DNA from: Laetmonice hystrix
Taxonomy: Eukaryota
Reading direction: 5' to 3'
Assembly (NCBI GenBank): GCA_965235115.1
Contig: OZ249447.1
Span: 7,564,001-7,628,000 of the forward strand
Length of the DNA: 64,000 bases
This document shows positions 14,617-39,308 of this stretch, piece by piece. Under the pieces are notes generated by a model that worked only from the letters and a program-made list of their open reading frames with translations, searched no databases and was not told where the DNA came from. The position numbers and the translations under genes were made by a program. How positions within the stretch are numbered: position 1 is the stretch's first letter; the number at the start of each line of letters is the position of its first letter.

Positions 14617-17600
14617 ATGACGAAGCGCCATCGGTGTGGGTTGATGGGAGGGTGAAGAACAAAGTGACTGACGAGATTGACAGTCTGACTGTGTCGTGTG
14701 GAGTGTTGTCTAGGTTTACCGCTAACCTCGATACAAACGTCAACTGTGACGACAGACGCACGTATCTCTGTGAGGACGATACCTGTGAGTAAGAATAGGA
14801 TTTCTCCGCCAGGTGACATTGCCATCACCCTATAGGTAGCGTTACTATCGCAACATAAGCACCTTCTTAAATAGAATAAATCCCATTATTGCATAATGTC
14901 TCATATATCTATGTAACTGGTATCTATGTCTACTATAGAGAGATAGTTGCTTTCATTTCGTTTTTAGATCTGATTATGTAATATTATTGATTATGTAATA
15001 TTATATATTACATAATCATGTCTTGAAGCGAAGAGGTGACTGACACTTAAATTTAATAGGCCCAAACAGTAGGCTGTCACGAGCTCTGATAGGCCTGTTT
15101 TTGGTTTTGTCTTTACATATTTGCAGGTCACGAGCTCCGATAGGCCTGTTATAGGTTTTGTCTTCACACATTTGCAGGTCACGAGCTCTGATAGGCCTGT
15201 TACAGGTGTTGTCTTTACATATTTGCAGGTCACAAGCTCTGATAGGCCTGTTACAGGTTTTGTCTTTACATATTTGCAGGTCACGAGCTCTGATAGGCCT
15301 GTTTTTGGTTTTGTCTTTACATATTTGCGGGTCACGAGCTCTGATAGGCCTGTTTTTGGTTTTGTCTTTACATATTTGCAGGTCACGAGCTCCGATAGGC
15401 CTGTTACAGGTGTTGTCTTTACATATTTGCAGGTCACGAGCTCTGATAGGCCTGTTATAGGTTTTGTCTTTACATATTTGCAGGTCACGAGCTCCGATAG
15501 GCCTGTTACAGGTTTTGTCTTTACATATTTGCAGGTCACGAGCTCTGATAGGCCTGTTTTTGGTTTTGTCTTTACATATTTGCAGGTCACGAGCTCCGAT
15601 AGGCCTGTTACAGGTTTTGTCTTTACATATTTGCAGGTCACGAGCTCTGATAGGCCTGTTACAGGTGTTGTCTTTACATATTTGCAGGTCACGAGCTCCG
15701 ATAGGCCTGTTACAGGTTTTGTCTTTACATATTTGCAGGTCACGAGCTCTGATAGGCCTGTTACAGGTTTTGTCTTTACATATTTGCAGGTCACGAGCTC
15801 CGATAGGCCTGTTACAGGTTTTGTCTTTACATATTTGCAGACGATAATTGTATTCGCGAACTTCCTGACTGGACATGGGTAGGCGGACATTGTATCATTC
15901 AGGACGGAGTTCCTCTTCCTGATCGCTTGAATTGGACTCAAGCTTGTTCGGAATGCGAAAAGAACGGATATCATTTGGTGTCCTTAGAAGACAATTACAA
16001 CAAATTAGCCTTCCGAACAGCACTACCAAATGACATAGCGAACCCTTGGATCGGACTCGTCAAAGCCAGAAATAGTAGGTTGGATTAGCTACCCACATTC
16101 AGGGACCGCAGAACAGTTTCGACAGTCGGGGGGGGGGTGCAGTTTGGGATGAGCCTGGAAACTACTGGAGATTGTTTTTACTTGTATTGAAAAAAGGCTT
16201 TCAGAAAAAAAGGGGGGGGGGGGGGCTGAGCTGCTGAGGCAGTTGAGGGTGGGTATTTCTTTATGTATTTTTTCATGTATGGCGCTATCCATGCCCCCCC
16301 CTATATAATATATAGCTATAGGTCGATTAGGCCTATATACACGTTCTAAACTAAACATGTGTTTTGTGTAGACATGTGCTTTAAAAAAGCTTTTATTATA
16401 TAACTGTGTGTTACGTCAAGGCAATGTTTAAGCCTACTGGCGGGATTAATATATTTCATTACAGAATGTGATAAGGGTTATATCGGTTGTAGTGGCTGTT
16501 TCGGTAAGTTTTTCTTGAGTCGCTCTTTCAAGGTTGAGGAACTCTCATATATCCAATGTAAAGTATTTGATCAATTATTTGTATAAACACACTGCTATCA
16601 GATCCCATACACTCGTTTACTTGACGTATTTCTCGCCATTATTCTGTTGCATTACTGATCATTCCTGTCTTTCCTATAGATATTGATGAATGTAAATACT
16701 GATCATTCCTGTCTTTCCTATAGATATTGATGAATGTAAATACTGATCATTCCTGTCTTTCCTATAGATATTGATGAATGTAAATACTGATCATTCCTGT
16801 CTTTCCTATAGATATTGATGAATGTAAACTAAAGCAAGCAAAATGTGCCTATGAAGCCAAATGTGTCAATATCAAAGGGAGTTACGTTTGTGATAGTAAG
16901 TTTATCAAATTATTTCAAAACTTTATAGATTGACCATACTATTGAAATATATTCAAACGGGGGGTGGGGGGGATTTAATTGTTATATAAGGTGCTCACTA
17001 GACGCTGACAGTACGCAAGATGGGCTGCAGGCAGTTATGACGTAACAATGGATTATTACGATCACAGTATCTATAATGATTACAATCGATAGGCGTAGTT
17101 GGCTATACTCATCATGATACAACAATGATTAAAACATCATTTTGATACCAGTTATGACGTAACAATGGATTATTACAATCACAGTATCTATAATGATTAC
17201 AATCGATAGGCGTAGTTGGCTATACTCATCATGATACAACAATGATTAAAACATGATTTTGATACCAGTTATGACGTAACAATGGATTATTACGATCACA
17301 GTATCTATAATGATTACAATCGATAGGCGTAGTTGGCTATACTCATCATGATACAACAATGATTAAAACATGATTTTGATACCAGTTATGACGTAACAAT
17401 GGATTATTACGATCACAGTATCTATAATGATTACAATCGATAGGCGTAGTTGGCTATACTCATCATGATACAACAATGATTAAAACATCATTTTGATACC
17501 AGTTATGACGTAACAATGGATTATTACGATCACAGTATCTATAATGATTACAATCGATAGGCGTAGTTGGCTCTACTCATCATGATACAACAATGATTAA

Positions 17601-20600
17601 AACATCATTTTGATACCAGTTATTTGTTCATTTTGACAGTAAACGAGTGTTACTCACAGCCTTGTCCGAATGATACAACATGTATCGATACAGTGGAATC
17701 GTTCGAGTGTGTTTGTGACGGCATTGTCGACAAGGATGTTTGTGATGGTTTGCTTTCATGTACTCATATATCATCTCACAAAATCCTGCGATTCACAAGA
17801 AATTGAACCCGAACAATTACGATCTCTTTGCAAGCTTAAATTGAAATAGATTCTTGCGCATACATCTCAAACTTTTGTTCATCAAAATTTGATAGTAGGC
17901 CTACGATTTATAAAGTGAGAATGCAGCCGTAAGAAATACAAGACTTCGCCCTCTTGGTTTTAAATGAGATAATATTCCTTATGGTTGATGATTTACTTTA
18001 ATTTCAGCTCCAATCTCATGCAACAAAGAAAATGGAGGTTGCCAACAGAAATGTGACGATTTAGCAGGAAAGGTTATCTGTTCGTGTAAGAAAGGGTACA
18101 AACTAAATGCCGACAGTCGCACCTGTTCAGGTAAAGCAGTATACCAAACGTATAGGTCGTTCTATATATAAACCTAATGTTTTCAATATGTGCCACCAAA
18201 ATAAGTGAAACATGAAACAATAAGTGGACGGAGGCGGGTATAGGAAGGAGTACAGTGTAGTAAGACCTAATTATTTGTATGTGTTTTATATGTAGATGTG
18301 CCGCCGACATGCGCAGTTGATAACGGCGGTTGCGGGCATTTCGCTCTCTGTAAGCCTGCTGACGTCACCAAGGGGGCAGTGACATGTCAATGTCCAGACG
18401 GATTCCTTCTCCAGGACGACAGATGTGTCGGTGAGTAAAACGATCCACTGGAAATACGTGGTGGTGTTGTGGTGGTGGTGATGGTGGGGGGGGGGGGGGG
18501 GCGCATATCGTGTACCATGACCAGACGCAGCTAAACATTATCAGAATGCGGAACGAGATCCCAAGAAGAACTTATAGCATTACAGCATGATCTATTTCTT
18601 TCATATTAAAAAGGGCACACTATAAGCGTAGCTACATCCCGACATGACCATTATTGAGACTTACTGGAATAGGTCACAACCTTGACTGAGAAATCGTAAC
18701 GTCAAGTTTGCCAAGTATAAATGTCTGAATCTTACAGATGACAATGAATGCGAGGATGACGTTTGCGACAAACTGCCATGTCTCAATACGTTCTGAGAAA
18801 TCGTAATGTTAAGTTTACCAAGTTACGTTTATGTCTGAATCTTACAGATGACAATGAATGCGAGGATGACGTTTGCGACAAACTGCCATGTCTCAATACG
18901 TTCGGCTCTTTCCAATGTGTTTGTCCGATTGGGCAAACATGGGACGGAGAGTCGTGCAATGGTGAATCATTGAATCTTTTTACAATACACATAATAATAT
19001 TATGTTCATATACATGTACAGGTGAAATTGCTTACATACAATATGGATTACATTTAGACAAGGCATCCCTATATGAATATCATTAATCCATGATACATTC
19101 GTTAAAAGATCAAGGATTTATTTGATTTGATGCTGATGACATACTATCCTATAATCGAGTTTATGTTTTATTCCTGACGACTCAGCTCGCTCGTTGTGTG
19201 CCGTTGTTTCAGGTACTACTCCACAGGACTGCTTGGTTTCAAACGGTGGCTGTGAGGACGAGTGTCTAGGATCATACGGACCATGCTCCTGTAGCTCGAA
19301 TGGGCTTACCCTATCAGACAATGGTCTTTCATGTGTCGGTATGTACAGAACCTATACCTCTTCATATATCAATACATAAGATCATGTATGCACCATGTGT
19401 CGGTATGTACAGAACCTATACCTAATATCATGTATGCAATCATATGTGGAGCCCAATTAATGCGGTGTTTCATGTATCAACCAGATATCGATGAGTGTGC
19501 CACACAACCTTGTCCAGACGGCGTGTATTGTTTGAATACTTACGGGTCGCATAAATGTGTTTGTCCTATTGGTAGCGTATGGACTGGTTCAAACTGCAGT
19601 GGTGAGTATGGCACAAAAACACACACACACAAAAAAAACAACAACAAAAAACACCAGCACATGTATTAATAGATGTATTAATAATAAACAAGGGACTACA
19701 TTTTTAGGGCAGACCACTCTCACAAATTTGGTAGAAGCTGTGCATAAAGTTCTCTCGATATTTCCTGTATAGCCGACATATTGAGGTGCAGCATCGCTAA
19801 CGGTGGATGCTCCCAGATCTGTGAGGAGTCCCATACCTCTGGAAGACCAGTGGTCAGCTGCAGGTGTTACCCTGGGTTCAGTCTGAGAGACGGCGTGTGC
19901 CGCGGTAGGTCGCTATCATCGTTTTTAGCTCTCCTCAACAAACTAATTCATGCATTCAAAGACCAATTTGGTGTATTTAATTCTCTGAGGTGTGTGTGTA
20001 TACTTGCATGCAGACATAGACGAATGTCTTCCTGACACGTGTTTCCCGTACGGATGTATCAACACCTGGGGGTCGTTCAAGTGTGTCTGTCCTGCTACCC
20101 GTGTATGGAACGGACAGGCTTGTGTCGGTGGGTTCAGTATACAGAAATATTCATTCTACCAATGTCAAGTACAGAAAGCTCTTTGTATATATAAATCTAG
20201 AGGTAACTACTGTAAAGTAGCTAGTTTATTCACCACGTGGCAGTTATACCAGCGAAATATGAGTGCGATTATCAAGCGCCATGGTTGAGTGGACACGGGC
20301 GAGTCCCAACGACGACCACCACCACAGAAGTGGTGGCACCTCTATTGGGATCGCTCGTGACTTCCTACCAATACCGCCACTCTCTTGTGCACCTCATCAA
20401 CATCGGTGGACCTCAACACCTGGGTTGACACCCTCTGGTCTTGGCCCACCTCGCGTCACGAGGCGACATGTCGCTTTAATCTTAGGCGACTGAGAAGCGT
20501 GTACACATTGACCACCCCTTGTCACGACTCATAGCGTGAAGTAGACTACTTGTACAGCTTGATAGAACACCTTGGCCCTCGGCGTATAATCTGCATGGGA

Positions 20601-23600
20601 TCATTCGTGGGCCGTGGTCTATCCCTTACATAAACGACCTCTGCTTTTAATCATTATTCCAAGTGGCAAACCTTTTCTTACAAGTGCTGTGTCAAGAACA
20701 GTAGCTGTATATTTCATTTCAAATTTAATTTGAGCTACTAGTATATTACTGTTACTTTCTCAAACACGTGTCTAAAAGTCGATGTCTCATTTTATTGAAG
20801 AGAAGAAAAACTGAACAGATTATCTATAATGATTTTATCGATGTTAAAACTGGTATACGATAGATGCCAAACGAGTGTGTGCTGTGAACAATGGTGGATG
20901 TGCCCAGAGTTGTTCTAGTGGAGAGTGTAGTTGTGGACCGGGCCTGGAACTCTCAGCCGACTCAACCAGCTGTGTCGGTACGTAAATTGGTCAGTCACCC
21001 TTCTCACCCCCACCCCGACCCCCTGTTATAGCCAGACACCGGTACGTAAACTGGCCAGTCACCCTACTCACCCCCACCCCGACCCCCTGTTATAGCCAGA
21101 CACCGGTACGTAACCTGGCCAGTCACCCTACTCACCCCCACCCCGACCCCCTGTTATAGCCAGACACCGGTACGTAACCTGGCCAGTCACCCTACTCACC
21201 CCCACCCCGACCCCCTGTTATAGCCGGACACCGGTACGTAACCTGGCCAGTCACCCTACTCACCCCCACCCCGACCCCCTGTTATAGCCAGACACCGGTA
21301 CGTAACCTGGCCAGTCACCCTACTCACCCCCACCCCGACCCCCTGTTATAGCCAGACACCGGTACGTAAACCGGCCAGCCACCCTACTCACCCCCACCCC
21401 GACCCCCTGTTATAGCCAGACATCCCTCCTTCAACCCCCCCCCCCTCCAAAGTCCTGGATACTGAACTGCTCGTGCTGTCTCTTCATTGCGTGATGGAAT
21501 GTTTTGTGAAGCTATACCTCGTACCGTAGGCCTGTATACTATGTCAGTGAACCAAGTGTTTAACATACTCAGACTATTAAGTACCACTAATGGTAGGATA
21601 TCACATGCAGAGATTTGTTGTAACCAAACGTGTCATTTTTGACTTACTGGTATAGACACGGACGAATGTAGTACCAGTGACCCATGCGGTAGCCTCAACT
21701 GTATCAACACGCTTGGGTCCTTCATCTGCCAATGTCCTGTGGGAACGGTCTGGGATGGAAAATCCTGCGTGCGTGAGTGTTATATATTTATAAATGTATT
21801 GACATTTTATTATCCCGTTTCCCTCCGTATTGGCTACCACACAACAAGTGTCAGGAACAAACAATGATCTCTTGTTTTCGGGAAGTTTGATGAAGCAGTG
21901 GATTGAAATTTTAGCTTTTGTTGTGGGATGGAAAATCTTCGACCGTTTCCCACAGAGCGGTCTGTAGGTATGGTAGGGAGGTTTCAGAAAGGAAATACTT
22001 CCCATAATCCGTTCTTGTGGTTTCCCTATTGTTCAAAGCACATGAATTATCATTTTAGTGACGAACATCTTTCGGTTTATATTATCATTCAGATGTAATT
22101 CGGGATTGCGACAAAAAGAACGGAGGTTGTGATTACAACTGTGATAATGGCCAATGTTCGTGCCCGGTTGGACTTCTACTGTCTGACAATGAGCAAAGCT
22201 GCATTGGTAGGTGTCATCTTATACAAATAAGGGGCAGAGTATTTGATATAAGGGAGGGGGCATATTTTTCCTTCTATGCAATCTATTTTGTTTACTTCCA
22301 AACCAATAAAGAACTTTATTTCCCTTCTACATATTTTATTTTTACATGCATGTGTGGTGAGATAAACCATCTGCTGTTTTCGTTTAAAACGTTTAAATGA
22401 GATATTAGCTGTGCCTTCCGTTGTCCCGAGAAGATGTTACTGTGAGGTTGACCTTCCAGATAAAGATGAATGTGCTGATGCCGGGGGGCAGGCCTCCTGT
22501 GGTTTTCCGTTTATCTGTGTCAATACGTTTGGCAGCTTCAACTGTATCTGCCCGCGTGGATTCGGTTTTGACGCTCAAACCTGCACCCGCAAGTATCTCT
22601 ACAACCATTTAGATAATCATGATTCGTGTAATTTGGCATTCTTGTAGGGCTCACAGCTATATTTAACAGTGAATATTCAGGATATTTTTATTCTTGCAAT
22701 GTACTTAGGTATATTATTTGTGTTCCTCTAAATTTATACTTGAAAGAATTAAATCTAATGAGGATATTGCTTGTACATTGTACTAGAACATATCTATGTG
22801 CTATCAGAGGAACATAATGATAGAATTCTCATATTATTTCATTGACACCTACACAATTATGTAACAGTTATATATTTCTTAATTGTTGACACCTCAGGTA
22901 ACTGTAGCATAGCCAATGGGAACTGCCAGTATACGTGTGAAGATGGGGAGTGCAGCTGTCCTGATGGTCTGGCTTTATCCGCCGACGGACAGACTTGTGT
23001 GGGTATGTATATAAAACCCTATAAGATCTACAGTATTGGACATAAGATATAGGTTTATCATATTCGTCATAAACTCTTCCTATAAGTTTATCATATTCGT
23101 CATAAACTCTTCCTATAGGTTTATCATATTCGTCATAAACTCTTCCTAAAGGTTTATCATATTCATCATAAACTCTTCCTAACTATGATATAAAGAGTTG
23201 ATGAATCAGTCCAGGTCGGCCTAGCATATAGTGGCCAGACTGCTTGATTCAGAAATAGGGGCATAACTTCTGTTCTCTTTTCAGATATCGATGAATGTGT
23301 TTTGAACACAGATGACTGCCCTTTCAACCGACCGTGTGAAAACACATTGGGATCGTTTGAGTGTAGAACCAAATGTCCAGGGAAGGCAATTGGATGCAGA
23401 ACGGACTTTGGTAAGATCTTTTCACATCGTTTGAGTGTAGAACCAAATGTCCAGGGAAGGCCATTGGATGCAGAACGGACTTTGGTAAGATCTTTTCACA
23501 TCGTTTGAGTGTAGAACCAAATGTCCAGGGAAGGTCATTGAATGTAGAACGGACTTTGGTAAGATCTTTTCACATCGTTTGAGTGTAGAACTAAATGTCC

Positions 23601-27215: not shown

Positions 27216-27409
27216 GAAGGAGGCATATTCAGCTAAAGGGAAGGCCCATTCATTGGATTTAATTAAGACCGAATACACAATTCACCGATATAAGAACTGT
27301 GAGTTTGCACTGCCACTACTGCTGGATTACCCCCGACTGTCACTGAACGACTGTCATTGAGTTGGGACTGTCATTGAGTTGGCATTGCAGATCTAGTAAA
27401 ACTTTAAAA

Positions 27410-30400
27410 ATGATTGTGCATTTTGGAAATTGTGGTTTCCAATTAAAGATTTCAGTAGAGGGTGTATTACTCTTACTAGTAATATTAGTAGCCTCATCCG
27501 TTGAAGCGAGAGAAAGCAAAGCAAAATGTGCTGTTTGTCAAGAAATCTCAAGCAAGTTTTTAGAGGTAGGTTCTATTTTTGAAAATATGATACATTAATT
27601 ATTTCATATGAGTTTTACTATTAGGATCCCCGTTAGAATCTGTATTTTACTTTGACCTTCCAACAATTCACAACAGAAAAATATTTATTGAAATATGCAA
27701 CATGAATTTGAGTTTTAAATCTATCGGTATAACTGAAGTCCAAAGCTATTTCATAATGATTGAAGATCATTTGATAAGGTTTGTGCTTTTTGTACAGGGT
27801 TTAAAAAAGACAGCAAAATCAAATTTTGGAGGAGGTAATACACGATGGGAGGAGAAGAGTTTAGGAAGCTACCAATACAGGTAAAGTTGACTTTCACAGT
27901 ATTGAATTCTATTATTTCATGTTCAGTATGATTATGATATAATATCTTGTATTTTTTTAAAAGGTGGACAGTAGATAGAAAACTAAGAAAAACTTGACAG
28001 TTCTGCATATATATTCACTTAGGAAATATTAACAGTCCGTATATAAAATGTGATTTCTCGGTTGTATTTGCAGTGAGACACGCTTGATAGAGATAACAGA
28101 AATGCTTTGCCAAGACTCCAATTCAGATGTAAGTTATAAAGATATGAATCGCTTATTTCAGCTGGTTTACTTATTCACTGAATAACCTTCCTTTTTTCAA
28201 TTCTAGGAGTATCAGTATAAGGCTTGAATAGACATTGTATATATTCAAACATCTTTCAAGTTGTACCCTCACTCAGTGTCGGTCTTTATAATATTGTTAT
28301 AGACAGTGCAAGAATATTTTGTTTTCTTTCCCCAAAGTGTCATAATTTCATGGAGATATGGGAAGAGAAGATGGAAGAGTGGTGGTTTAAACATTTTGCA
28401 AAAGGAAAGGACAGAAATTTCTTTGAATACTTCTGTATTCAGCTTACTAAAGGTAAGGGTAGCAATAGCAGATTAGATTGACTTGATTGTAATCCTGTAT
28501 TGACATTTCTGCTAACTTTGTATAGGGTCATATTACCGGTAATGAAAGGAGGTTGAAAATTTAACATTAAAATGATCCGTTGAAGGAGAACATGAGATAA
28601 ATAATGACGTAAGATATTTGTGAGGAACCAGTATGATCTGAATGTCATGTACATTTTTCAATGAGGAAATGCCTTGTTTACAATAGTGTGCTGTCCAGAC
28701 AATACCTATGGTCCAGACTGTGAGCCATGTCCAGGCAGTGCAGGAAGACCATGCAATGACAATGGAAAATGTAATGTGAGTAGTTCCTCCATCTTTAAAC
28801 CCCTGAAATCTGAAGTATCCCATGAAAACAATATTTTGGTAGGATTTGCACAGAACATCCAAATTTACATAGAGAACTTACTTTGTCAAGTTGAAAGGTT
28901 CTTGCTGAATGTAGATTCCAGAACATGGAAAGTTCTAGAAAAGTCTGTATTTTACTGGCTTGAATTATTCTGACAGATCAGATAAAAATGTGACACCTTA
29001 TGTCGTTTTGTTTCAGGGTGCTGGCACCAGAGAAGGCACGGGAAAGTGTGAGTGTAACGAGGCCTACGATGGTGATCTATGTGATGATTGCAAAGAAGGC
29101 TTCTATGAAGAAATGCGAAATGAAACCCATGTGACCTGTGGAAGTATGATAAGCTTCTCATTATTCATTGTAAATAAAGGAATAACAGTAATGATTTAAA
29201 GGAACATAAAGGTACGGGGTATTTGCTAAAATTAACAACAATGGATTTATATATAGATTGAATAAGCATATTAAGGGCAGGTAGAATTGTGTAGATTTAG
29301 TAATTCCCACAAAGGTTATTTCAACTTTTTCATCTAAATTGTCATGTTCAGTTTTTTCTAAAGTTTTGCTTCGAACAGAAAGCTATAGTTTTATTTTCAC
29401 ACATTTTAAAATTCTGATCCATCAACCCTTTTTTTGCAGAGTGCCATGAAGCATGTGATGGAGGCTGCCATAAGGAAGGGGCGGCTGGTTGCCATGACTG
29501 CAAGAAAGGCTGGAAGCAAGAAACTGATGATAGTTGTCAAGGTACATCTTGAATACTTTATATCAGATAGCCAGGATATGAGAGAAAATTGTGAAATGAA
29601 TTTTGTTCTCTCTTCAGATGAATACAAATTATACATGTAAAGGCAAATCTGAACTCTTTGTAAGGCGTTGGTCATATTTGTTGTTATTTCTTATCGTTGA
29701 TGTCATAATGTAAAATTATCCCTGGTTTTGTTATTTTCAGATATGGATGAGTGTGCTGAAGATACAGAAAACACTTTGTGTCAAGAAGACCAATACTGCA
29801 GCAACACTCCAGGATCATATAGATGTGAAGGTGAGTGTGAAATAGAAGTTTAATTCTGCAATATTCTGTGACATACCTTGGTAATATCTAAAGATCGAAA
29901 ACAGACACAGATGCGCCAAGTCTATTGGGTAAAAGGAAAAAGAAATCTATAATTCTAAATTTTTCAGAATGCAAAGATGGCTGTTCCAAATGTAGTGGAC
30001 CAGGCCCTGACAAGTGCACCGAGTGTAAGAAGTCTCATTATCAAGAAGATGGGGCTTGTAAACGTGAGTGTTTTATGACAACACCAAGTGTTCAGGTGTT
30101 CATTTCAACTCTTCTATTGGGTACTGCTTCTCGTAATATTTTGAATGTGTTGATTTACCATTTACTTTTAAAAAGAGAACTAAATTTATCAGACAAAGAT
30201 GCAAGTATTTTAAAAGGTGCTTAATACATCATCACCTTCCTTACCAGAATCATGATTGAGTTGACTTAAATAGTTTGTGTTAAGGTCAGTGATAACGCCT
30301 ATGTTATTGCAGTTTGTGACCCATCGTGTGAAGAGTCATGTTCGGGACCAGGACCCAAGGTCTGTGAGAAGTGTAGGAGTGGTTATAACATGGTGGATGA

Positions 30401-33400
30401 AGAAGGATGTCAAGGTATGGTTACAAGATGCAAACATCTACTTGTATTCATCATCTAACAGTACATACAGAAGTTTACTAGTTGACACTGGAATATAATA
30501 TAACCCTAAGACATCCTTGTAGTTACACATTTCCATAAGGGAATAGAAGGCTTGGGATGATTTCCAAAAATAATTTCAAGCAAACACTGGTAGGTCTTGT
30601 ACTGTGTATTTGTTTTGAACAATATAGGTGAATTTTAGCGCAGATAAGTTTTTTAAAGTTGATGACACTAGAGTGGTGTTACTTTAACTGTACAATTTAA
30701 CTTTTAAATGTATTTTACATTTACAACAGATATTATTGAATGTGGACAGGAGGAGCCTGTTTGTGATGAGGGCCAGTACTGCATCAATACTCAGGGCTCA
30801 TATTATTGCCGTAGTAAGTAGGGTAATTCTCCCTCATACCTAATAAGATGTGATTTAATCTGGTTACCGACATATTATCTGAACTCAACATGTAGCTGTA
30901 GGCCTTATAATGGTAGGAACAGAAGATATTGGGTATAAATGGCAAAGGCATTATCCTGTTGAAAAGCATAATAATCTGCAGTGTACGTATTGGGGATAAA
31001 TAATCTATTTTCATGTAGATCAATCAGGTCTTGTCTTATAGAATATTGAAGCATGTAATAAAAAAAAATCGCTATGATTTATAAAAGGAATTGTAGCCCT
31101 GCCTTATCATGCCTGAGGTATGTGGCCATGCTAGGTTTGTGTAGTTCTGATATCTGTAGTTAGGAGTTCCGTTCATATTTTAATTTTGTGTGTTGGTATT
31201 AAAAATCTGTGTTTTGTTTTCAAATGTTTCAGCATGTGACAAGGCATGTAAGAGATGTAAGGGTGAAGGTACTATGTGTGACGAGTGTGCCAGTGGTTAT
31301 CAGATAAAGGAAGGGACCATAGAATGTACAGGTGAGAATTAACAGCCCTCAGTAACCTGAGAACAGCTTTGAACAAATATTATCTGTACCTTGATGTCAT
31401 CATAGGGTTGAGAATCGGTTAAGAAAAAGAAATGAATTTAACAATCACTTACCTGCAAGGTGTTTTTAATTGTAAAGGTGTTTGTGGTTCCAGATATAGA
31501 CGAATGTTTAGGAGAGACAAAGGCATGCACGGGTGATAACGAGAAGTGTGTGAATACCATTGGAGGATACAGCTGTGACTGCAAGAAAGGATACATTCGG
31601 AGGGGAAGTAAATGTGAACTTCGCAAGAAAGGTGCATAAAATTGTTTAAATCATCACATTCTCTAGGTGGGGGGGGGGGGTTAAAATATTTTTGGAAAAG
31701 TTATATTTTCTGGTTTATTTGATAGAATTTGTAGAATTGTCGTTATTGTAAAGATTTCATGGAGACTTGTATGACTTCCATAGGTATCCTAATGTTATTT
31801 ATTGATTTTTTTTGTGGGTTTGTTATAATGATTGCCTGGTTACTTCCACAGTATCTGCAACCTACTCCAAGCAAGCGTGTGAAATATGCACTGGGATTGT
31901 GAACAAGTTTAAAGAGGCAAGTTTTCTATAGATGTGCCAGTTCTTTTCTTTAAAGGATAAAAAAACACTTTCTGTATAACTCCATCACAATCAATATTGA
32001 CATATAAAAATCTGTTATTTGTATTCACATTCTGTCCTATTTGTCCTGATCGTTGAATATGTTCTCAGGGATTGAAGAAAACAGACAAGCTGAACTTTGG
32101 TGGCGGTAACACCCAATGGGAGGAGAAACGTCTTGGCAATTTCGCTTACAGGTTTGTGAGGTTCAACTCTCCGGCAATCATTTTAAACCTTTTGTAATTT
32201 GTCCTTTCATGGCTGACTGAAGTCAGTGTATCCTGGTATCCACAGTGATCCTATCTTTATGTCAACTATTGTCAATTATACTCATATTATCTGCTATTTT
32301 GACCATGTGATATTTCAGCGAGACACGACTGGTAGAAATATCTGAGGGAATCTGTGATGACTCAGACAAAGATGTAAGTGGGATGTTACACTTTACCAAT
32401 CTTATGTCTTTCAAATATATATCAAGCTTGCCTTTGTCTGGTTGGATGCAAGACTCCATTTTTGAGAATTCATCTTTATTTTACCTTTTCAATGTAACAG
32501 GTAGGGATGAATCGGGGACAGCTGTGGAATGCCTGCCGCAGGTACAACGTTCATGAGTTTATGAAAACCTACTTTGATTTGTTATTTCAGTGTTACAAGA
32601 TGATGGAGACGAATGAACAGTTTCTTGAACAGTGGTGGTTTAAACACTTTGCTGAGCAAAAAGATACAGACCTGCATAGCTACTTTTGTGTCAATCGTGT
32701 AGAAGGTAGGTTGAAGCGTCAACATTGCTGGATCCCATTCCACAGTATTTGATATAAACATCGGCCATTCTATGTGAATTGGACAGAATTATGGAGACGG
32801 TCAACAACTGCGAAGAGTGTTGTAAAAAGTTATTGTTGGTTTAATTCAAGATTCAAGACTCATGGAGCACTGGTTTTTTTGCCTGATTTAATATGTTCCA
32901 TAATTTGGTTACAGCCTGCTGCCCTAAAGGGACGTTTGGATCATCCTGTACTGAATGCCAAGGTGGGAAGGAAAACCCATGCAGTGGAAACGGAAAATGT
33001 GATGTGAGTTCTGTACTGAAAGCAGTTTTCATTATTGATTATGCATATTCACATGCAGGCTTGTTTCAGGATTTGTAGAATATTAGATTTATTTTATATT
33101 TGTGAACAAATATTTCAGGGTGAAGGTACTCGGGAAGGTGGAGGAGCTTGTTCCTGTAATGATGGCTACACTGGCGATACCTGTGACCAGTGTGGAAAGA
33201 AATTTTATGAAGAACGGAATGAAACACACCTCCTTTGTAAAGGTAGGTTAACTTGTTTGTTAATTTGGCATTTTCTGTCACAGAGTCCTTGCCAAAAGAA
33301 CAGAAATAATTTCTTAAAAGCAATATGAATCATTTATATCAGACTACCCGTATATTGTGAAACCCTAAGAACCAAATTTTGACTATGAATTGTACAAATG

Positions 33401-36400
33401 TCATGTTCTGACCAGGTTCATGGAATTGACTTCTGTTATTTTTACATACAGACTGTGACGATGCCTGTGAAAGTTGCTGGGCAGAGGGTCCCGCTGGATG
33501 TCATGAATGTAGGTCAGGATGGACTAAGGATGAAGAGAAAGGATGTTTAGGTGAGTGAAAGATGTCACTAGAACTGGAACAGAGGAAAAGTTACAGAAAG
33601 ATTTGTGCCGTCCCTTGTTATTTCTGAAAATGATGTTTGATGGTGCGAGGGATGGTCAATGATAACCAAACTACTCTGTTACAGACAAGGACGAGTGTGC
33701 TGCTGAAGTGTGGCCGTGTAGTGAGAACCAGCATTGTGTTAACACAGACGGCTCCTTTAACTGCCAGAGTGAGTTAATACAAAACGTTCATTAGAGTTTC
33801 TCTTCAATTTCTCTCCAGTAGTATGAAGATAAAACCAGATATAACTGTTGACAAGAGAATAAGAATAATTTTTGTTTCAAAATACAGACGCCCTTCTAGC
33901 TTGATTCAAGATATTCTACATTAGAACTTTTCCCCGTCCCGTTATGGTAAAATATTTACGGTCTGTGATATTGTTGATTCCAGATTGTCACCCAGCTTGT
34001 AAAGGCTGCACTGGGCCTGGAAATGACATGTGTTCAGAGTGCAATAAACACTACTTCCCAGACTCAGGAAAATGTTTTGGTATGTTAACTCAAGCTAGTA
34101 TCTGAAAGTGGTAATAAATCTTTAAAAAAAAATTTCTTAAATGTAAATCTGAAAAAAGTGTTTATTGGCAGATGTGGTGAGACTGCTGTCACTTAGTAGA
34201 GGTAAGATTACTGTCATGGGTAAATGTTTCAGAATGCCATGAAGCGTGTGAAAGCTGCACCACAGGGGGCCAACAGGAGTGCACGGAATGTCGCAGTGGA
34301 TGGATCTATAAGGAGGGCGAGGGCTGCGTTGGTGAGCAGATTAAGTTAAACTCATTTGTAACTAAACTAATGTTGTCGTTTAAAGAAAGTCGTTATTTCA
34401 CACCAAATGCTAAGTAGTTTAGTCTTCCTTTTTTCTATTTCAATTATTCCATATTACAGTTTTCAATGAAAATCAGAGCATTGATTTTCAACAAGATAGA
34501 TAGGTGAGGTAAGAAATGAGTGTTGTATTTACAGATGTCAATGAATGTAGTCGTGAGGAGCAGCCGTGTACATCAGATGAATATTGTGTCAACTCACTAG
34601 GCTCGTACAGATGTCATGGTAGGTTTGCTAACTCAGGTATAATCTCAGTCATGAGATGAATATTGTGTCAACTCACTAGGCTCATACAGATGTCATGGTA
34701 GGTTTGCTAACTCAGGTATAATCTCAGTCATGAGATGAATATTGTGTCAACTCACTAGGCTCATACAGATGTCATGGTAGGTTTGCTAACTCAGGTATAA
34801 TTACGGTCTAAAGAGAAAAAAGTCATAAAATCATGTTTTGAATTCTCCCCAGATTTTAAGGACAGATAGAGGTTACAGGGCTCAGGCTTTCTCACTTGAC
34901 TTATGACCATAACTTTGTGCAGGCTATAAGAAAATTTAGATTAAGATTGTTCCAAGTATATTCAAATAGCTCTGGAGGTTCTATTGGCCAGTCTTACTGT
35001 ATTACTGTATCGTTACAGGTTGCCACACGGCCTGTCAAGGATGTAGCGGAGCAGGCAATGATAACTGCCAGAGTTGCTCGGTTGGCTATCAACATGAAGA
35101 GGGGGTATGTGCAGGTATGTAGATTCCAGCCATGGTAAAACGTAAAACTGTCTATCTGTCTTGAGAAGTGTTGGAAGTTTGTAATTTGATCTGGATGATA
35201 TATTTATAGTCATTGTGTTATCATACAGACATAGACGAGTGTTCAGCAGATGAAGTGTGTAAAGGAAGTGGTGAGACATGTTCCAACACCGTGGGAAGTT
35301 TCAAGTGTGATTGTGTTAGTGGATACGTTAAAAAAGATGGTGTCTGTACAAAGAAAACAAAAGGTAAGACAAATTGATAGTTTCTTGTGGGACAGTAACT
35401 TCTTTTTGTGGGACAGTAGCTTTAGATGTGTTGTGATAGTTTGCTCAGTATGTTTGCTATAGTTTGCTCTGTATATGTTAAAGATTTTATTATTGTACGA
35501 ATGAAATGTTGCTTCATGGTGAATCAATAATTTCCAGTACCGGTAATTAAAATATTGTCCAATGTTGCTAATAGGTGTTGAAACTAGCTTGAGTGTGACT
35601 TTCTGTGCATATGCATTCATGTTGTACCATCCGTTGTACTGGTACTTGATGCACATCCTAGTAATGGGGGCACCTGTTGGGTGCTGTATACTGGCAGACA
35701 TAAAAAATGGATACTTGACATGTGTAAGCATGAAGAAGTTTCTGTATGATTGTTATAGGTTATCATGTCTGTGTAAAATGTGTGAACAATTGCAAATGAA
35801 CCCAAGTGAGCAGATAGGAATGACTGCACATTAAATACTGACAATAAATGATTGAACAACCAGGCGTGCTATTAACACTAAAAACGTGAACAAAATGTTA
35901 GGGGGGAATTTAGAATACTGGCTGTAACTTGAGTTACCTGACACCCAGCCAGGGAAACATTTCTCAATATTAAATATCAAAATAGACTTTACTGCTATTG
36001 TGTTTGATATTTAGGGATTTAGGAATATGGATTGGAAACTTGAAATCATTTAGTTATAATCAGGCATATGTTCCCCCAAGCAAATGGAGCATGTGATTGC
36101 TTTGTGTTGCGAGATACTGAGTGACTGTATGTAATGTCCAATGCCTTGCAGAATATTTGGGTTTTCATTTAACTAAAATTCCAAAAGAAAGTCCCAATTG
36201 GCAGATTGGTGTCTGTGTTTATGTTGTAATTTCTTACAAGTGCTAGTGCTCATTTCTTTCAACTTATAATTCATAGCAGATTTAGTGTCAGCAACTGAAT
36301 AAATGTGAATAGATGTTCGATAGCCAACCAAAGTGTTAGTGACAGTGGCCTGTCTCCCGTTTGTCTTGTAGATTCTACAAAGACAAAGGCTAAACAGAGC

Positions 36401-36649
36401 AAACAGAGTAATGGCAGAACAGGCAGACCCAGGGCCCAACCCCCAGACTTGAAGAAAAAGAGGAAGACGAAGAAAGACCAAAGCCATGAACACCTAAAGT
36501 ATTTCTCATCCCTGCTTGGCTATGCCTTGGTGGGATATTTCCTGAGAAAAAGCTGGGTGGCTCAGCTGGTGTTTAGTTGTACTTTCTGGATATATCTTTA
36601 TTGGTTTAGCTTGAGGTTTGAGAAAGCTAAACCAAAGTTTACCATGTAG
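27410..36649 (+). CDS. CRELD: CRELD family protein with two tandem DUF3456-EGF-furin/cbEGF modules; transmembrane (CRELD1-like) isoform, ~945 aa
   Basis: Module 1 exons: 27410-27565, 27798-27880, 28074-28128, 28338-28452, 28687-28775, 29017-29143, 29440-29541, 29741-29830, 29968-30063, 30313-30414, 30730-30813, 31233-31331, 31494-31631. Module 2 exons: 31852-31916 (GC donor), 32069-32151, 32319-32373, 32591-32705, 32915-33003, 33119-33242, 33452-33550, 33685-33768, 33984-34079, 34233-34331, 34535-34618, 35019-35114, 35229-35363. Terminal exon 36372-36649 has two hydrophobic segments. The hallmark NFGGGNTxWEEK..YSETRL.E occurs twice. The exon sum of 2838 nt is in frame. Confidence 0.93.
34577..34800 (+). 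repeat. 79-bp tandem repeat, ~3 copies, spanning a CRELD exon end and donor
   Basis: Unit atgaatattgtgtcaactcactaggctc(g/a)tacagatgtcatg|gtaggtttgctaactcaggtataatctcagtcatgag. Confidence 0.92.
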
Positions 36650-39126
36650 ACATTGGCTCCAGGAGCTGCCGTTTTGGCCTGTCATAAATTTCTTTCTTCT
36701 TCATTATCATTTCATATCATGACTGAAAGGAACATGCAAGCCCAGGGCATGTTTGGTATGTCTGAGTGGGTGACAGCATTAGTCTCACTGTTAGAGAGTG
36801 AGATAAAAAAGATTTAATGATAACTCGTTGTCATATCTAGTCAGTCGTCTTGTTAGTACCCTCCATTGCAGGTGTACTTTTGTATTATACAGTTGTACAA
36901 TATTGTACAATGTTGTACCATATTGTACAATGCCTCCAGCTAGGCAGTATGTGTGTTAAAAACGAACGTATGAACAATTGTTTTGACCAGTTTCATCTTC
37001 TCTCATTTGTCAGGCAGAGTCATGGGAATCATACCTTTAAGTCATATTTTGAAGGGAGTTAAAGGGAATAGGAGGGTGCAACACAGTACGACTTATCAAA
37101 GTGTAGTTCACCAGGCATCTGGTCCAAGCATATGCACCTGTGTTTAAGTATGAAAGAGATAGGTTAATTATATAGGCCTAAGGCTTGAAGTCCTAAAAAC
37201 CATCGTTAGATTATCTACTGCATGTAAAGAGCTAAAGGTACTAGCAAGACAAATTGGCACAAGACATTATATGAATGTCTATAAGTAACTTCGTGTACCG
37301 TTATTTTACAGGAAGTTCCATGTTATGAAAGCTGGTTTTCTTGTGTGGTTTTTTTTTTAGCCTTGAATTCGAGATTGATGACTGATAAATCATAGTCCCA
37401 GGGCATACTTATGGCGACCCCCAAAGTGGAATTGAAAATCAATGGTTTTGCTTGATTTTTTCTGTCTAACGAATCACCCACTGCTAAGTAGCTAAATGTT
37501 GCAGATATATGCTCTGATGCTGCCGGAATATGTTAAAATATTCCATGGTCAGTGTTTACTAAAAAAGGCTGAACTATTCTACATGGGGAAACCGTTTGAC
37601 ACAAGTGGTACATGTACACATTATCATAAAGAAAGGAAACTTTGACGTTTTATTTGAGTTGGGTTCATTACGATACTAAACCAGTCACATGACCACAGGT
37701 GACCAGCATGCTTGAGGTGATCAAGTTTGTCAGGGGCAGACCAAGAAGGGGTAGGGTGAGGGGGGCACACAAGTGTTCCCACGCATGGGGTAAAGGGAGG
37801 GCTCACTGATTGGTTAAACCTTTTTGTTGGAGGCTGAGGATGCAGTGAAAGCGGTCCTTTTGAATCGTGATACCATGGATAGTCTGTGTCAAGATGACTG
37901 CCCAGGGCAAGCATAAATATTAAAACATCGTATGGGAAGTTCATTCACTTGAAGAGACTCAGAGAGCCATTGTTGGAGTCGGTGATGAATTATGTTTTGA
38001 AATATTGGAATTTGTATAATGTCTACAGCGCGTATCGTACTTGTAGACAAATGTATTAACAATTATACAGGTAGCTGAACCAATTTTAAATCTTTTGTGA
38101 ATGTGAGTCAGCTGTAGAGTTGACTGGCTCCTTCGTCTAGTGTAACAGCACAGTGTCAGTAGGCCTCATGAAATGTGGCTCGTTACAGACAATCGAGGGA
38201 ACTGTAAAAACCATTTTATGTGCCTTAAAGTTTTTTTAGAAGGCGATGGGTTCATTTGTGTAGGTGAATCAGGAAAGTGTAGTTTGTGTGAGTGTGAAAA
38301 ATATTCCTCGTGATTCTGCTTCAGGAGAAAAACTAGATACGATAATGGGATCGGCACTATGTCTTGCTCATCTTTCTTTTGAGATTGTGTTTTTTCCTGT
38401 CTTTTGTTCTGCCGCCTGTTTGTATATCACAAAAATAAAAGACTTTTGTTTACGTACTATAATAATAGTATGCCAAACAGTCCTTGTCATTCTCTGGCGT
38501 TAAAAAGGGAGTTTCCATCCTTAAGACGGGCAGCTTCAGGATATTGCTACAGAGTCGCTCCACCATAGAACTAGGATAATGCTGACCTTACGTATATAAG
38601 AAGCCTAGTCACCGGTCCTGAGAAAGTACCTCTGAACAATCACATTTTGTACCTATAATAAACGTGATTGTTTCCCTACACGGTAACAAACGTATCAGTT
38701 TTGTTGTGTTCGTCCGCGTGAGCAGATGGGTGCTATTCTGAGGTTGGACACACAAAAACATTGTCTTCCATGTCCCTTGGTAACCGTAATAATACTAAGC
38801 CGTGGATTGGGAAAGATATCCCCATCGTCGGAAATAGGTACACTATTGAATTTTAGTGGTGGTTGTACAAAAAAGGTTTTCAAATCTCGATACAAAATGT
38901 GGTGCGAGATGTCCTATTGGTACTTGCGAATCGGTTTGGTAGGTATAGGTATACATGTAATAAGATATTTCTCAAATTGTTGACAGGGGTTTTGTGAGGA
39001 AATACATGATACCAAAACATATTCTCAACTTCTTTTACCTTCTTCCATCCCCTATAATACGTATGAAATTCAGAAAGAAATAGAAAATTACACATCATCT
39101 TTCTACCGGTATATTTTCTATGACAG

Positions 39127-39308
39127 GAAAAAAGGGGAAGGGGAAGAAACGGAAAAAGTCCAAGGATTCAGCAGAGAAAAGCAAGGAGCCACCAAAACCC
39201 AGTATTCCAGGAATTGACAACGACATGTTCATAGACGCATCGACCGCCTCAGCCGACCAGGTGGCTGAGAAAATACAGAAGATAATGAGAGACAAGGTTG
39301 AGTTATGA
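39127..39308 (+). CDS. CRELD: Alternative terminal exon of CRELD encoding a soluble tail ending in the KDEL-like KVEL* (isoform ~913 aa)
   Basis: The acceptor ttttctatgacag is in phase 1, matching the donor at 35363. It encodes GKKGKGKKRKKSKD...KIQKIMRDKVEL* with no hydrophobic segment. Confidence 0.75.

Follow-up and report, generated by a model that had tools for sequence, protein, structure and literature searches.

CRELD1, a human disease gene, and CRELD2 encode conserved factors of the endoplasmic reticulum (ER) that act in receptor assembly and in the response to ER stress. To our knowledge, the way in which their WE domain and its CXXC motif engage clients is still poorly understood. 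The N-terminal CXXC was identified by substrate trapping as a protein disulfide isomerase (PDI) site in C. elegans CRLD-1 and mammalian CRELD2, and alternative last exons of C. elegans crld-1 give a form with two transmembrane (TM) segments and a KDEL form (PMC6245729). Here we describe a CRELD locus of Laetmonice hystrix in which two complete modules of this kind follow one another in a single reading frame. It lies on the + strand of a window of 64,000 nt, by which we mean the whole stretch analysed (assembly GCA_965235115.1, contig OZ249447.1, positions 7,564,001 to 7,628,000). The best reading of the locus is one gene that would encode a fused double-module CRELD, to which we assign a probability of roughly three in four.

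Two CRELD modules in one open frame

The exon model, rebuilt by reading and translation over 27300-35500, consists of two collinear modules of 13 exons each on the + strand, 27410-31631 and 31852-35363.

Module 1, exons 1-7, + strand: 27410-27565, 27798-27880, 28074-28128, 28338-28452, 28687-28775, 29017-29143, 29440-29541
Module 1, exons 8-13, + strand: 29741-29830, 29968-30063, 30313-30414, 30730-30813, 31233-31331, 31494-31631
Module 2, exons 1-7, + strand: 31852-31916, 32069-32151, 32319-32373, 32591-32705, 32915-33003, 33119-33242, 33452-33550
Module 2, exons 8-13, + strand: 33685-33768, 33984-34079, 34233-34331, 34535-34618, 35019-35114, 35229-35363
27410-27565, + strand: module 1 exon 1, with the ATG, a signal peptide with hydrophobic core GVLLLLVILVASS, and CAVC; its end is in phase 0, and it can be aligned with named CRELDs at their N-termini
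27798-31631, + strand: module 1 exons 2-13, the rest of the WE/DUF3456 domain (NFGGGNT.WEE, WWFKHFA), then EGF-like, four furin-like and three cbEGF exons; last donor in phase 1
31852-31916, + strand: module 2 exon 1, with a phase-1 acceptor and neither ATG nor signal peptide; has CEIC and the consensus helix of the family (GIV.KF.E), and a GC-AG intron comes next
32069-35363, + strand: module 2 exons 2-13, a second complete WE domain, EGF, furin-like and cbEGF set

The original prediction of an exon-for-exon tandem duplication, in frame, of a 13-exon module was borne out in all twelve length pairs (exons 2 to 13, module 1/module 2: 83/83, 55/55, 115/115, 89/89, 127/124, 102/99, 90/84, 96/96, 102/99, 84/84, 99/96, 138/135), in phases and in splice sites, and the CXXC, NFGGGNT-WEE and WWF motifs that it had ascribed to each module were all located in both, as CAVC (module 1) or CEIC (module 2), NFGGGNT.WEE and WWFKHFA. 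Intron phases are the same in the two modules, every acceptor is AG, and donors are GT throughout with the sole exception of that after module-2 exon 1 (31916/31917), which is a consensus GC donor (GAG/GCAAGT). Joined, the 26 exons give a single open frame of 853 codons, in which module 1 accounts for residues 1-445 and module 2 for residues 446-853, and both modules end in phase 1. The signal peptide of module-1 exon 1, judged by inspection, has a hydrophobic core and a VEA/R site and was aligned with the N-termini of named CRELDs. Module-2 exon 1 (65 nt) is the counterpart of the last 65 nt of module-1 exon 1 and begins at about the former signal-peptidase site. A tblastn search with the fused protein revealed no third module or hidden last exon in the whole 64-kb window.

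The intron after module-2 exon 1 is of the GC-AG type, its module-1 counterpart has a GT donor, and no close GT donor would preserve the frame. The weak EGF matches of the tblastn search belong to an unrelated upstream gene on the + strand with many cbEGF-like exons (16800-23400), outside the CRELD locus.

Membership of the CRELD family

The locus combines the features by which a CRELD is recognised, namely an N-terminal signal peptide (in module 1), a WE/DUF3456 domain with CXXC, EGF, furin-like and cbEGF repeats, and C-termini with either two TM segments or a putative retrieval tetrapeptide. At the level of single exons, Pfam assigned EGF_CA to the last exons of both modules (E 1.9e-11 in module 1 and 1e-9 in module 2) and EGF_laminin to exon 6 (E 8.4e-7) and gave weak GF_recep_IV matches for the furin-like exons. 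Both copies of exon 4 matched DUF3456 (positions 114-146 of 150) below threshold, with E-values of 0.088 and 0.018, because the domain is split over four exons. Full modules compared by BLASTP with proteins carrying PF11938 gave E-values of 1e-94 to 1e-130.

Homologues were collected with a profile of the two exon-4 peptides against 1.84 billion representatives. In BLASTP against this collection and later matches each module is 42-49% identical over ~400 residues to named CRELDs, and the best module matches are annelid or annelid-like (Paralvinella, Dimorphilus, and the transcript-derived P0054 and P0005). Module 2 matches outgroup CRELDs as closely (up to 49%) as module 1 does, and its exon 1 fits other CRELDs at least as well as that of module 1; CEIC is also the oyster motif, and GIV.KF is also found in annelid-like CRELDs.

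Divergence and constraint

The modules share 49.4% of 407 aligned residues, and the alignment pairs all 54 cysteines of one with the 54 of the other. The proportion of synonymous differences between them (pS) is 0.85, which is saturated, and the non-synonymous proportion (pN) is 0.34. Nucleotide identity between paired exons is 49-67%, and the twelve homologous intron pairs are about as similar as shuffled sequence, 2 of the 12 lying marginally above their 20 shuffles. Saturated synonymous sites, a pN of 0.34, aligned cysteines and randomised introns together indicate that the duplication is old and that both copies are under constraint at the protein level, in keeping with the earlier description of clearly diverged modules with dissimilar introns. 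Module 2 is under purifying selection. Within the sample, the single-nucleotide polymorphisms (SNPs) of the fused frame comprise 13 synonymous and 3 conservative non-synonymous changes (11 and 2, respectively, in module 2 among those shown), and introns carry indels. One SNP, at 31853, is synonymous in the codon that a splice from 31631 to 31852 would form.

These data bear directly on the idea that module 2, although transcribed, has lost its function and is decaying in the 3' part of the transcript as a relic of the duplication. Nothing specific speaks for it beyond the unobserved junction between the modules and a 79-nt repeat that has copied the donor of one module-2 exon. A decaying copy is hard to reconcile with a frame that stays open over 408 codons with all cysteines and motifs kept, with synonymous sites that are saturated against a pN of 0.34, with SNPs that are mostly synonymous, or with a resemblance to outgroup CRELDs (up to 49%) equal to that of module 1, and we consider the idea scarcely credible. 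The repeat itself is as follows.

34571-34801, + strand: tandem repeat with a 79-nt unit (2.9 copies, 98% matches) that places further copies of the 3' end of module-2 exon 11, donor included, in the intron

Three identical donor sites result. Splicing in the RNA takes place at the first (34618), and use of either of the others would bring a frame shift of 79 nt.

The interval between the modules

31632-31851, + strand: inter-module intron, 220 nt, with no terminal exon or usable start exon; length polymorphisms

Scanning the gap for a start exon gave ATG-started segments of 3-8 codons only, none with a hydrophobic stretch, and the frame that leads directly into module-2 exon 1 opens only at 31806 and contains no Met. 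Read-through past the donor at 31631 meets a stop after two codons. The scan agrees with the original prediction, according to which module 2 has neither signal peptide nor ATG and starts with a phase-1 acceptor 220 nt past the last donor of module 1, with no terminal exon in between.

DNA contigs from three runs (X1-X3), all from one sample that is possibly the assembled one, cross the module boundary, for example at 31474-31939 and 31539-32165, so that the adjacency of the modules is no product of assembly joining. A collapsed haplotype or assembly artefact, which had been discounted from the outset, was rejected on the 49% identity of the modules and on these boundary-spanning contigs. The inter-module intron is polymorphic, with a GG insertion at 31668 and a 2-nt deletion at 31808; the length of its poly-G run (31668-31680) differs between runs, the GG insertion being present in X1.

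Last exons and copy number

A scan for phase-1 acceptors downstream of module 2 located two convincing last exons.

36372-36649, + strand: last exon A, with a phase-1 acceptor, a basic linker and two hydrophobic segments, CRELD1-like; 945 aa with both modules
39127-39308, + strand: last exon B, with a phase-1 acceptor and a basic/acidic tail ending in KVEL, CRELD2-like; 913 aa with both modules

Exon A is clearly alignable to the two-TM C-terminus of the single-module CRELD P0054, and KVEL is a non-canonical, putative ER-retrieval motif. In the 627-Mb genome, exon 4 and exon 6 have two copies each, all of them at this locus, and the TM exon is single copy; searches with these three exons found no other CRELD locus in the genome. 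It follows that this is the sole CRELD locus and that the two modules share one start and one set of ends. A genome scan with Pfam DUF3456 matched only two other loci elsewhere and missed the CRELD locus, because the domain is split by introns.

Transcript evidence and alternative gene models

Module 2 is transcribed and correctly spliced. This was observed in X4, a small run that is not on record as RNA, contains spliced contigs, comes from the same sample as the DNA, and was used as contigs on 31400-37399. Its contigs have GT..AG joints at exactly ten predicted module-2 introns, 32373>32591 through 35114>35229 (exon 3 to exon 13), and one continues from 35363 (a loose end behind 35364) into the sequence of 39127 onward, which places a splice between module-2 exon 13 and the KVEL exon. 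A further contig enters module-1 exon 13 from the end of exon 12 (a loose end before 31491), representing an exon 12>13 splice. DNA runs X1-X3 show none of the splice joints of X4.

The TM exon was not seen in spliced form in X4, where an unspliced contig crosses its acceptor at 36372. Because X4 is only unspliced there, the use of this exon in transcripts is predicted from homology. Unspliced X4 contigs at a depth of 5-23 lie over much of 35612-37399, including the intron before the TM exon, the TM exon and downstream sequence; they could be pre-mRNA, a long terminal exon or another transcript.

Several observations weigh against a single fused gene. X4 has no contig over 31600-32199, which holds the tail of module-1 exon 13 and module-2 exons 1 and 2 and includes the junction 31631>31852, and the transcript evidence as a whole comes from only one RNA-like run, as contigs, from the same sample as the DNA. 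In record 25, an X4 contig that contains exon 3, the sequence upstream of that exon is not exon 2 but the final 49 nt of module-2 intron 2; this could represent retention of the intron or, with less likelihood, a transcript start within module 2. Module-2 exon 1 is followed by a GC donor, and GC donors are often linked with alternative splicing. The phases would also permit joining of exon 1 to module-2 exon 2 and of module-1 exon 13 to either last exon, so that single-module isoforms produced by block skipping are possible as additional products; the phase-0 donor of module-1 exon 1 in particular could reach module-2 exon 2 and leave module-2 exon 1 unused.

The hole in coverage amounts to ~200 nt in mRNA terms and has heterozygous sites inside it at 31621, 31853 and 32319. 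Heterozygous sites break short-read graphs, and no X4 contigs shorter than ~150 nt are listed. For these reasons we read the hole as an assembly dropout. The contig that runs into module-2 intron 2 ends at an indel polymorphism (32194-32265). In all three DNA runs a second haplotype replaces these 72 nt of the intron by 11 letters; the X4 contig that retains the last 49 nt of intron 2 carries the T allele at 32319 and breaks off at the edge of the indel, and intron retention here may be allele-specific.

The same contig speaks for two tandem paralogous genes, with a separate promoter for module 2 in or near 31632-32318 and separate translation of its product: the contig ends in intron 2 just upstream of module-2 exon 3, and module 2 has no RNA coverage farther upstream. 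Its end, however, coincides with a haplotype indel, a typical assembly break, and the gap offers no ATG-started exon with a signal peptide. A transcript starting in intron 2 would have internal Met codons only and no signal peptide, yet the product contains 54 conserved disulfide cysteines that need the ER. Module 1 would in turn be left without a stop or last exon save for the two-codon read-through, in a gap without poly(A) signal or RNA coverage. Separate genes are therefore quite improbable.

Another possibility is a single gene with cassette-style choice of modules, in which exon 1 is spliced to module-2 exon 2, or module-1 exon 13 directly to a last exon, yielding mainly single-module CRELDs of ~470-540 aa with different bodies while the double form is rare or absent. 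The phases fit both skips (the end of exon 1 and the start of module-2 exon 2 are in phase 0, module-1 exon 13 and both last exons in phase 1), alternative use would agree with the GC donor behind module-2 exon 1, and it is exactly this part that the RNA contigs leave uncovered. On the other hand, an unused module-2 exon 1 should have decayed as the introns have, and it keeps an open frame, the CXXC and the consensus helix; a block skip of 13 exons (3.7 kb or more) would be unusual; and X4 has no such joint, though 31631>36372 falls inside the 31400-37399 stretch examined. On balance we consider module choice as the main output of the locus unlikely.

One fused gene accounts best for these data. 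Module 2 is expressed, spliced and constrained and has the character of a disulfide-rich secretory protein, and hence needs a signal peptide, which only module-1 exon 1 can supply. The frame, CXXC and consensus helix of module-2 exon 1 were kept while the introns were randomised, which points to a used coding exon. With its phase-1 acceptor and no ATG, such an exon has to receive its splice from a phase-1 donor in module 1, most naturally the one at 31631, 220 nt upstream. The synonymous SNP in the junction codon, the like phase-1 junction of the Babylonia double CRELD described below and the alternative last exons established for crld-1 speak for the same reading. As for the earlier claim of fusion in frame, the in-frame arrangement stands, as do the missing start of module 2 and the missing end of module 1; the 31631>31852 splice, and with it the fused transcript, we infer, since the junction lies in the hole of the only RNA data.

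Double-module CRELDs in other lineages

Against hundreds of single-module CRELDs of 317-634 aa, the matches listed in homologue and profile searches included two with a double module and no more. One is LOC143285214 of Babylonia areolata, a RefSeq 'uncharacterized protein' of 783 aa, and the other is ACOMHN_021893 of Nucella lapillus, a partial model of 589 aa. The double-module architecture is not unique, having uncharacterised, independently evolved precedents in public databases, and the suggestion that it was undescribed must be given up to that extent. Literature searches found no description of a double CRELD and no paper on the Babylonia or Nucella models. Homologue searches were limited by word sharing and in part to the best 120 matches, the exon-4 profile search reached only 52 proteins, and the Babylonia protein was missed by homologue searches with annelid-like queries. 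The search for two-copy proteins, a Pfam version of which had been proposed as a check, yielded only these two, of independent origin; such proteins are not common among the matches listed, and because of the limits set by word sharing and list length the rarity of double CRELDs is indicated, not proven.

Two other candidates were set aside. The 'CRELD2' of Cordylochernes scorpioides (P0021, 814 aa, two stretches) was judged a merged-annotation artefact; it has a transposase-like N-terminal stretch (by inspection) and two near-identical truncated CRELD copies, each with its own TM tail. An ENA contig (L005) is uninformative for the Laetmonice lineage; its CRELD, from another organism, is compact and single-module, and the 6.4 kb upstream contain no further module.

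In a maximum-likelihood tree of 43 sequences, modules 1 and 2 both fall into an unresolved bilaterian polytomy with end branches of ~0.8. Sisterhood of the two modules was not rejected by the approximately unbiased (AU) test (p 0.50), which is no proof of it, so that the phylogeny of module 1 versus module 2, also proposed as a check, is compatible with a lineage-specific duplication followed by fast divergence and does not prove it. Among the caenogastropods, the two modules of the neogastropod proteins group as sisters (100/97), with the ordinary single CRELD of the same species next to them, and their duplication was therefore independent of that in Laetmonice. In the Babylonia double CRELD (L009, CM085414.1, 14629-19155) a long (CA)n microsatellite lies directly upstream of the first-exon acceptor of the second module.

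A model for the fused gene and its implications

We posit an ancient tandem duplication that took in all coding exons from exon 1 through the last cbEGF exon, after which the second copy came to extend the first in frame. In any CRELD the final cbEGF exon ends in phase 1, as it must to join phase-1 last exons. In the copied exon 1, a new phase-1 acceptor, arising roughly where signal peptidase used to cut, would have removed the part that encoded the signal peptide. With a phase-1 donor and a new phase-1 acceptor, the 31631>31852 splice would read straight on. Two main products would result, one an ER-luminal chain of 913 aa that ends in KVEL and the other a chain of 945 aa with two TM segments; each is predicted to have one signal peptide and two complete WE(CXXC)-EGF-furin-cbEGF units. 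By analogy with CRLD-1 and CRELD2, both WE domains may be redox-active or chaperoning ER sites, held apart by a disulfide-rich stalk; ER residence and catalytic activity of the products are suggested on the same grounds, and the CXXC conserved in both modules hints at a bivalent foldase.

More speculatively, a bivalent CRELD may have arisen at least twice in spiralians, here and in neogastropods, by the same route, in which the gene body is duplicated in tandem and the phase-1 donor behind the last cbEGF captures an exon 1 that lacks the signal. In Laetmonice the two-site form would have replaced the single-module CRELD altogether, and both CXXC-WE domains might act on clients, for example on two subunits of a multimeric receptor at once. 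We put this broader proposal forward tentatively and regard it as doubtful in its entirety.

If the fused reading is correct, a sole CRELD with two complete, selectively maintained WE-EGF units would be a natural test of whether WE valency or spacing matters, and the second, independent double CRELD in neogastropods suggests that the arrangement is selectable and no accident. The locus would also illustrate cleanly how an entire gene body of many exons can duplicate without loss of frame by way of symmetric phase-1 exons. A practical limit is that the organism is no laboratory model.

Comparison with known systems

The likeness to classical PDI (a-b-b'-a') is functional only, in that two CXXC-bearing domains are placed on one ER-retained chain (a predicted property here); the thioredoxin fold of PDI is unrelated to WE/DUF3456. 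Single-module CRELDs, including vertebrate CRELD1 and CRELD2, C. elegans CRLD-1A/B, Paralvinella palmiformis LSH36_188g10000, Dimorphilus DgyrCDS10638 and P0054/P0005, have the same layout as each module of the Laetmonice locus, with an N-terminal CXXC, a WE/DUF3456 domain with GGGNT.WEE and WWF, an EGF-like region, and furin-like and cbEGF repeats. They differ in having one module each, whereas in Laetmonice two complete modules stand in one frame with no separate single-module gene. The C. elegans crld-1 gene is similar in being one gene with alternative two-TM and KDEL-type last exons.

The Babylonia and Nucella models likewise have two WE-EGF units on one polypeptide with one signal peptide; the Babylonia tail is KDEL-like (KQEL). 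The Babylonia junction is built as in Laetmonice, with a KK+G/GT phase-1 donor after the last cbEGF exon of module 1 and a phase-1 acceptor just before the second CXXC. Exon 1 of the Babylonia gene is 156 nt, and its module-2 exons include some of about 83/55/115 nt, as estimated from alignment extents. In contrast to Laetmonice, where both modules are complete and the locus is the only CRELD, the first module of the Babylonia and Nucella proteins has lost GGGNT.WEE and some repeats, a 12-aa basic mini-exon stands between the modules, and a normal single CRELD gene is present alongside.

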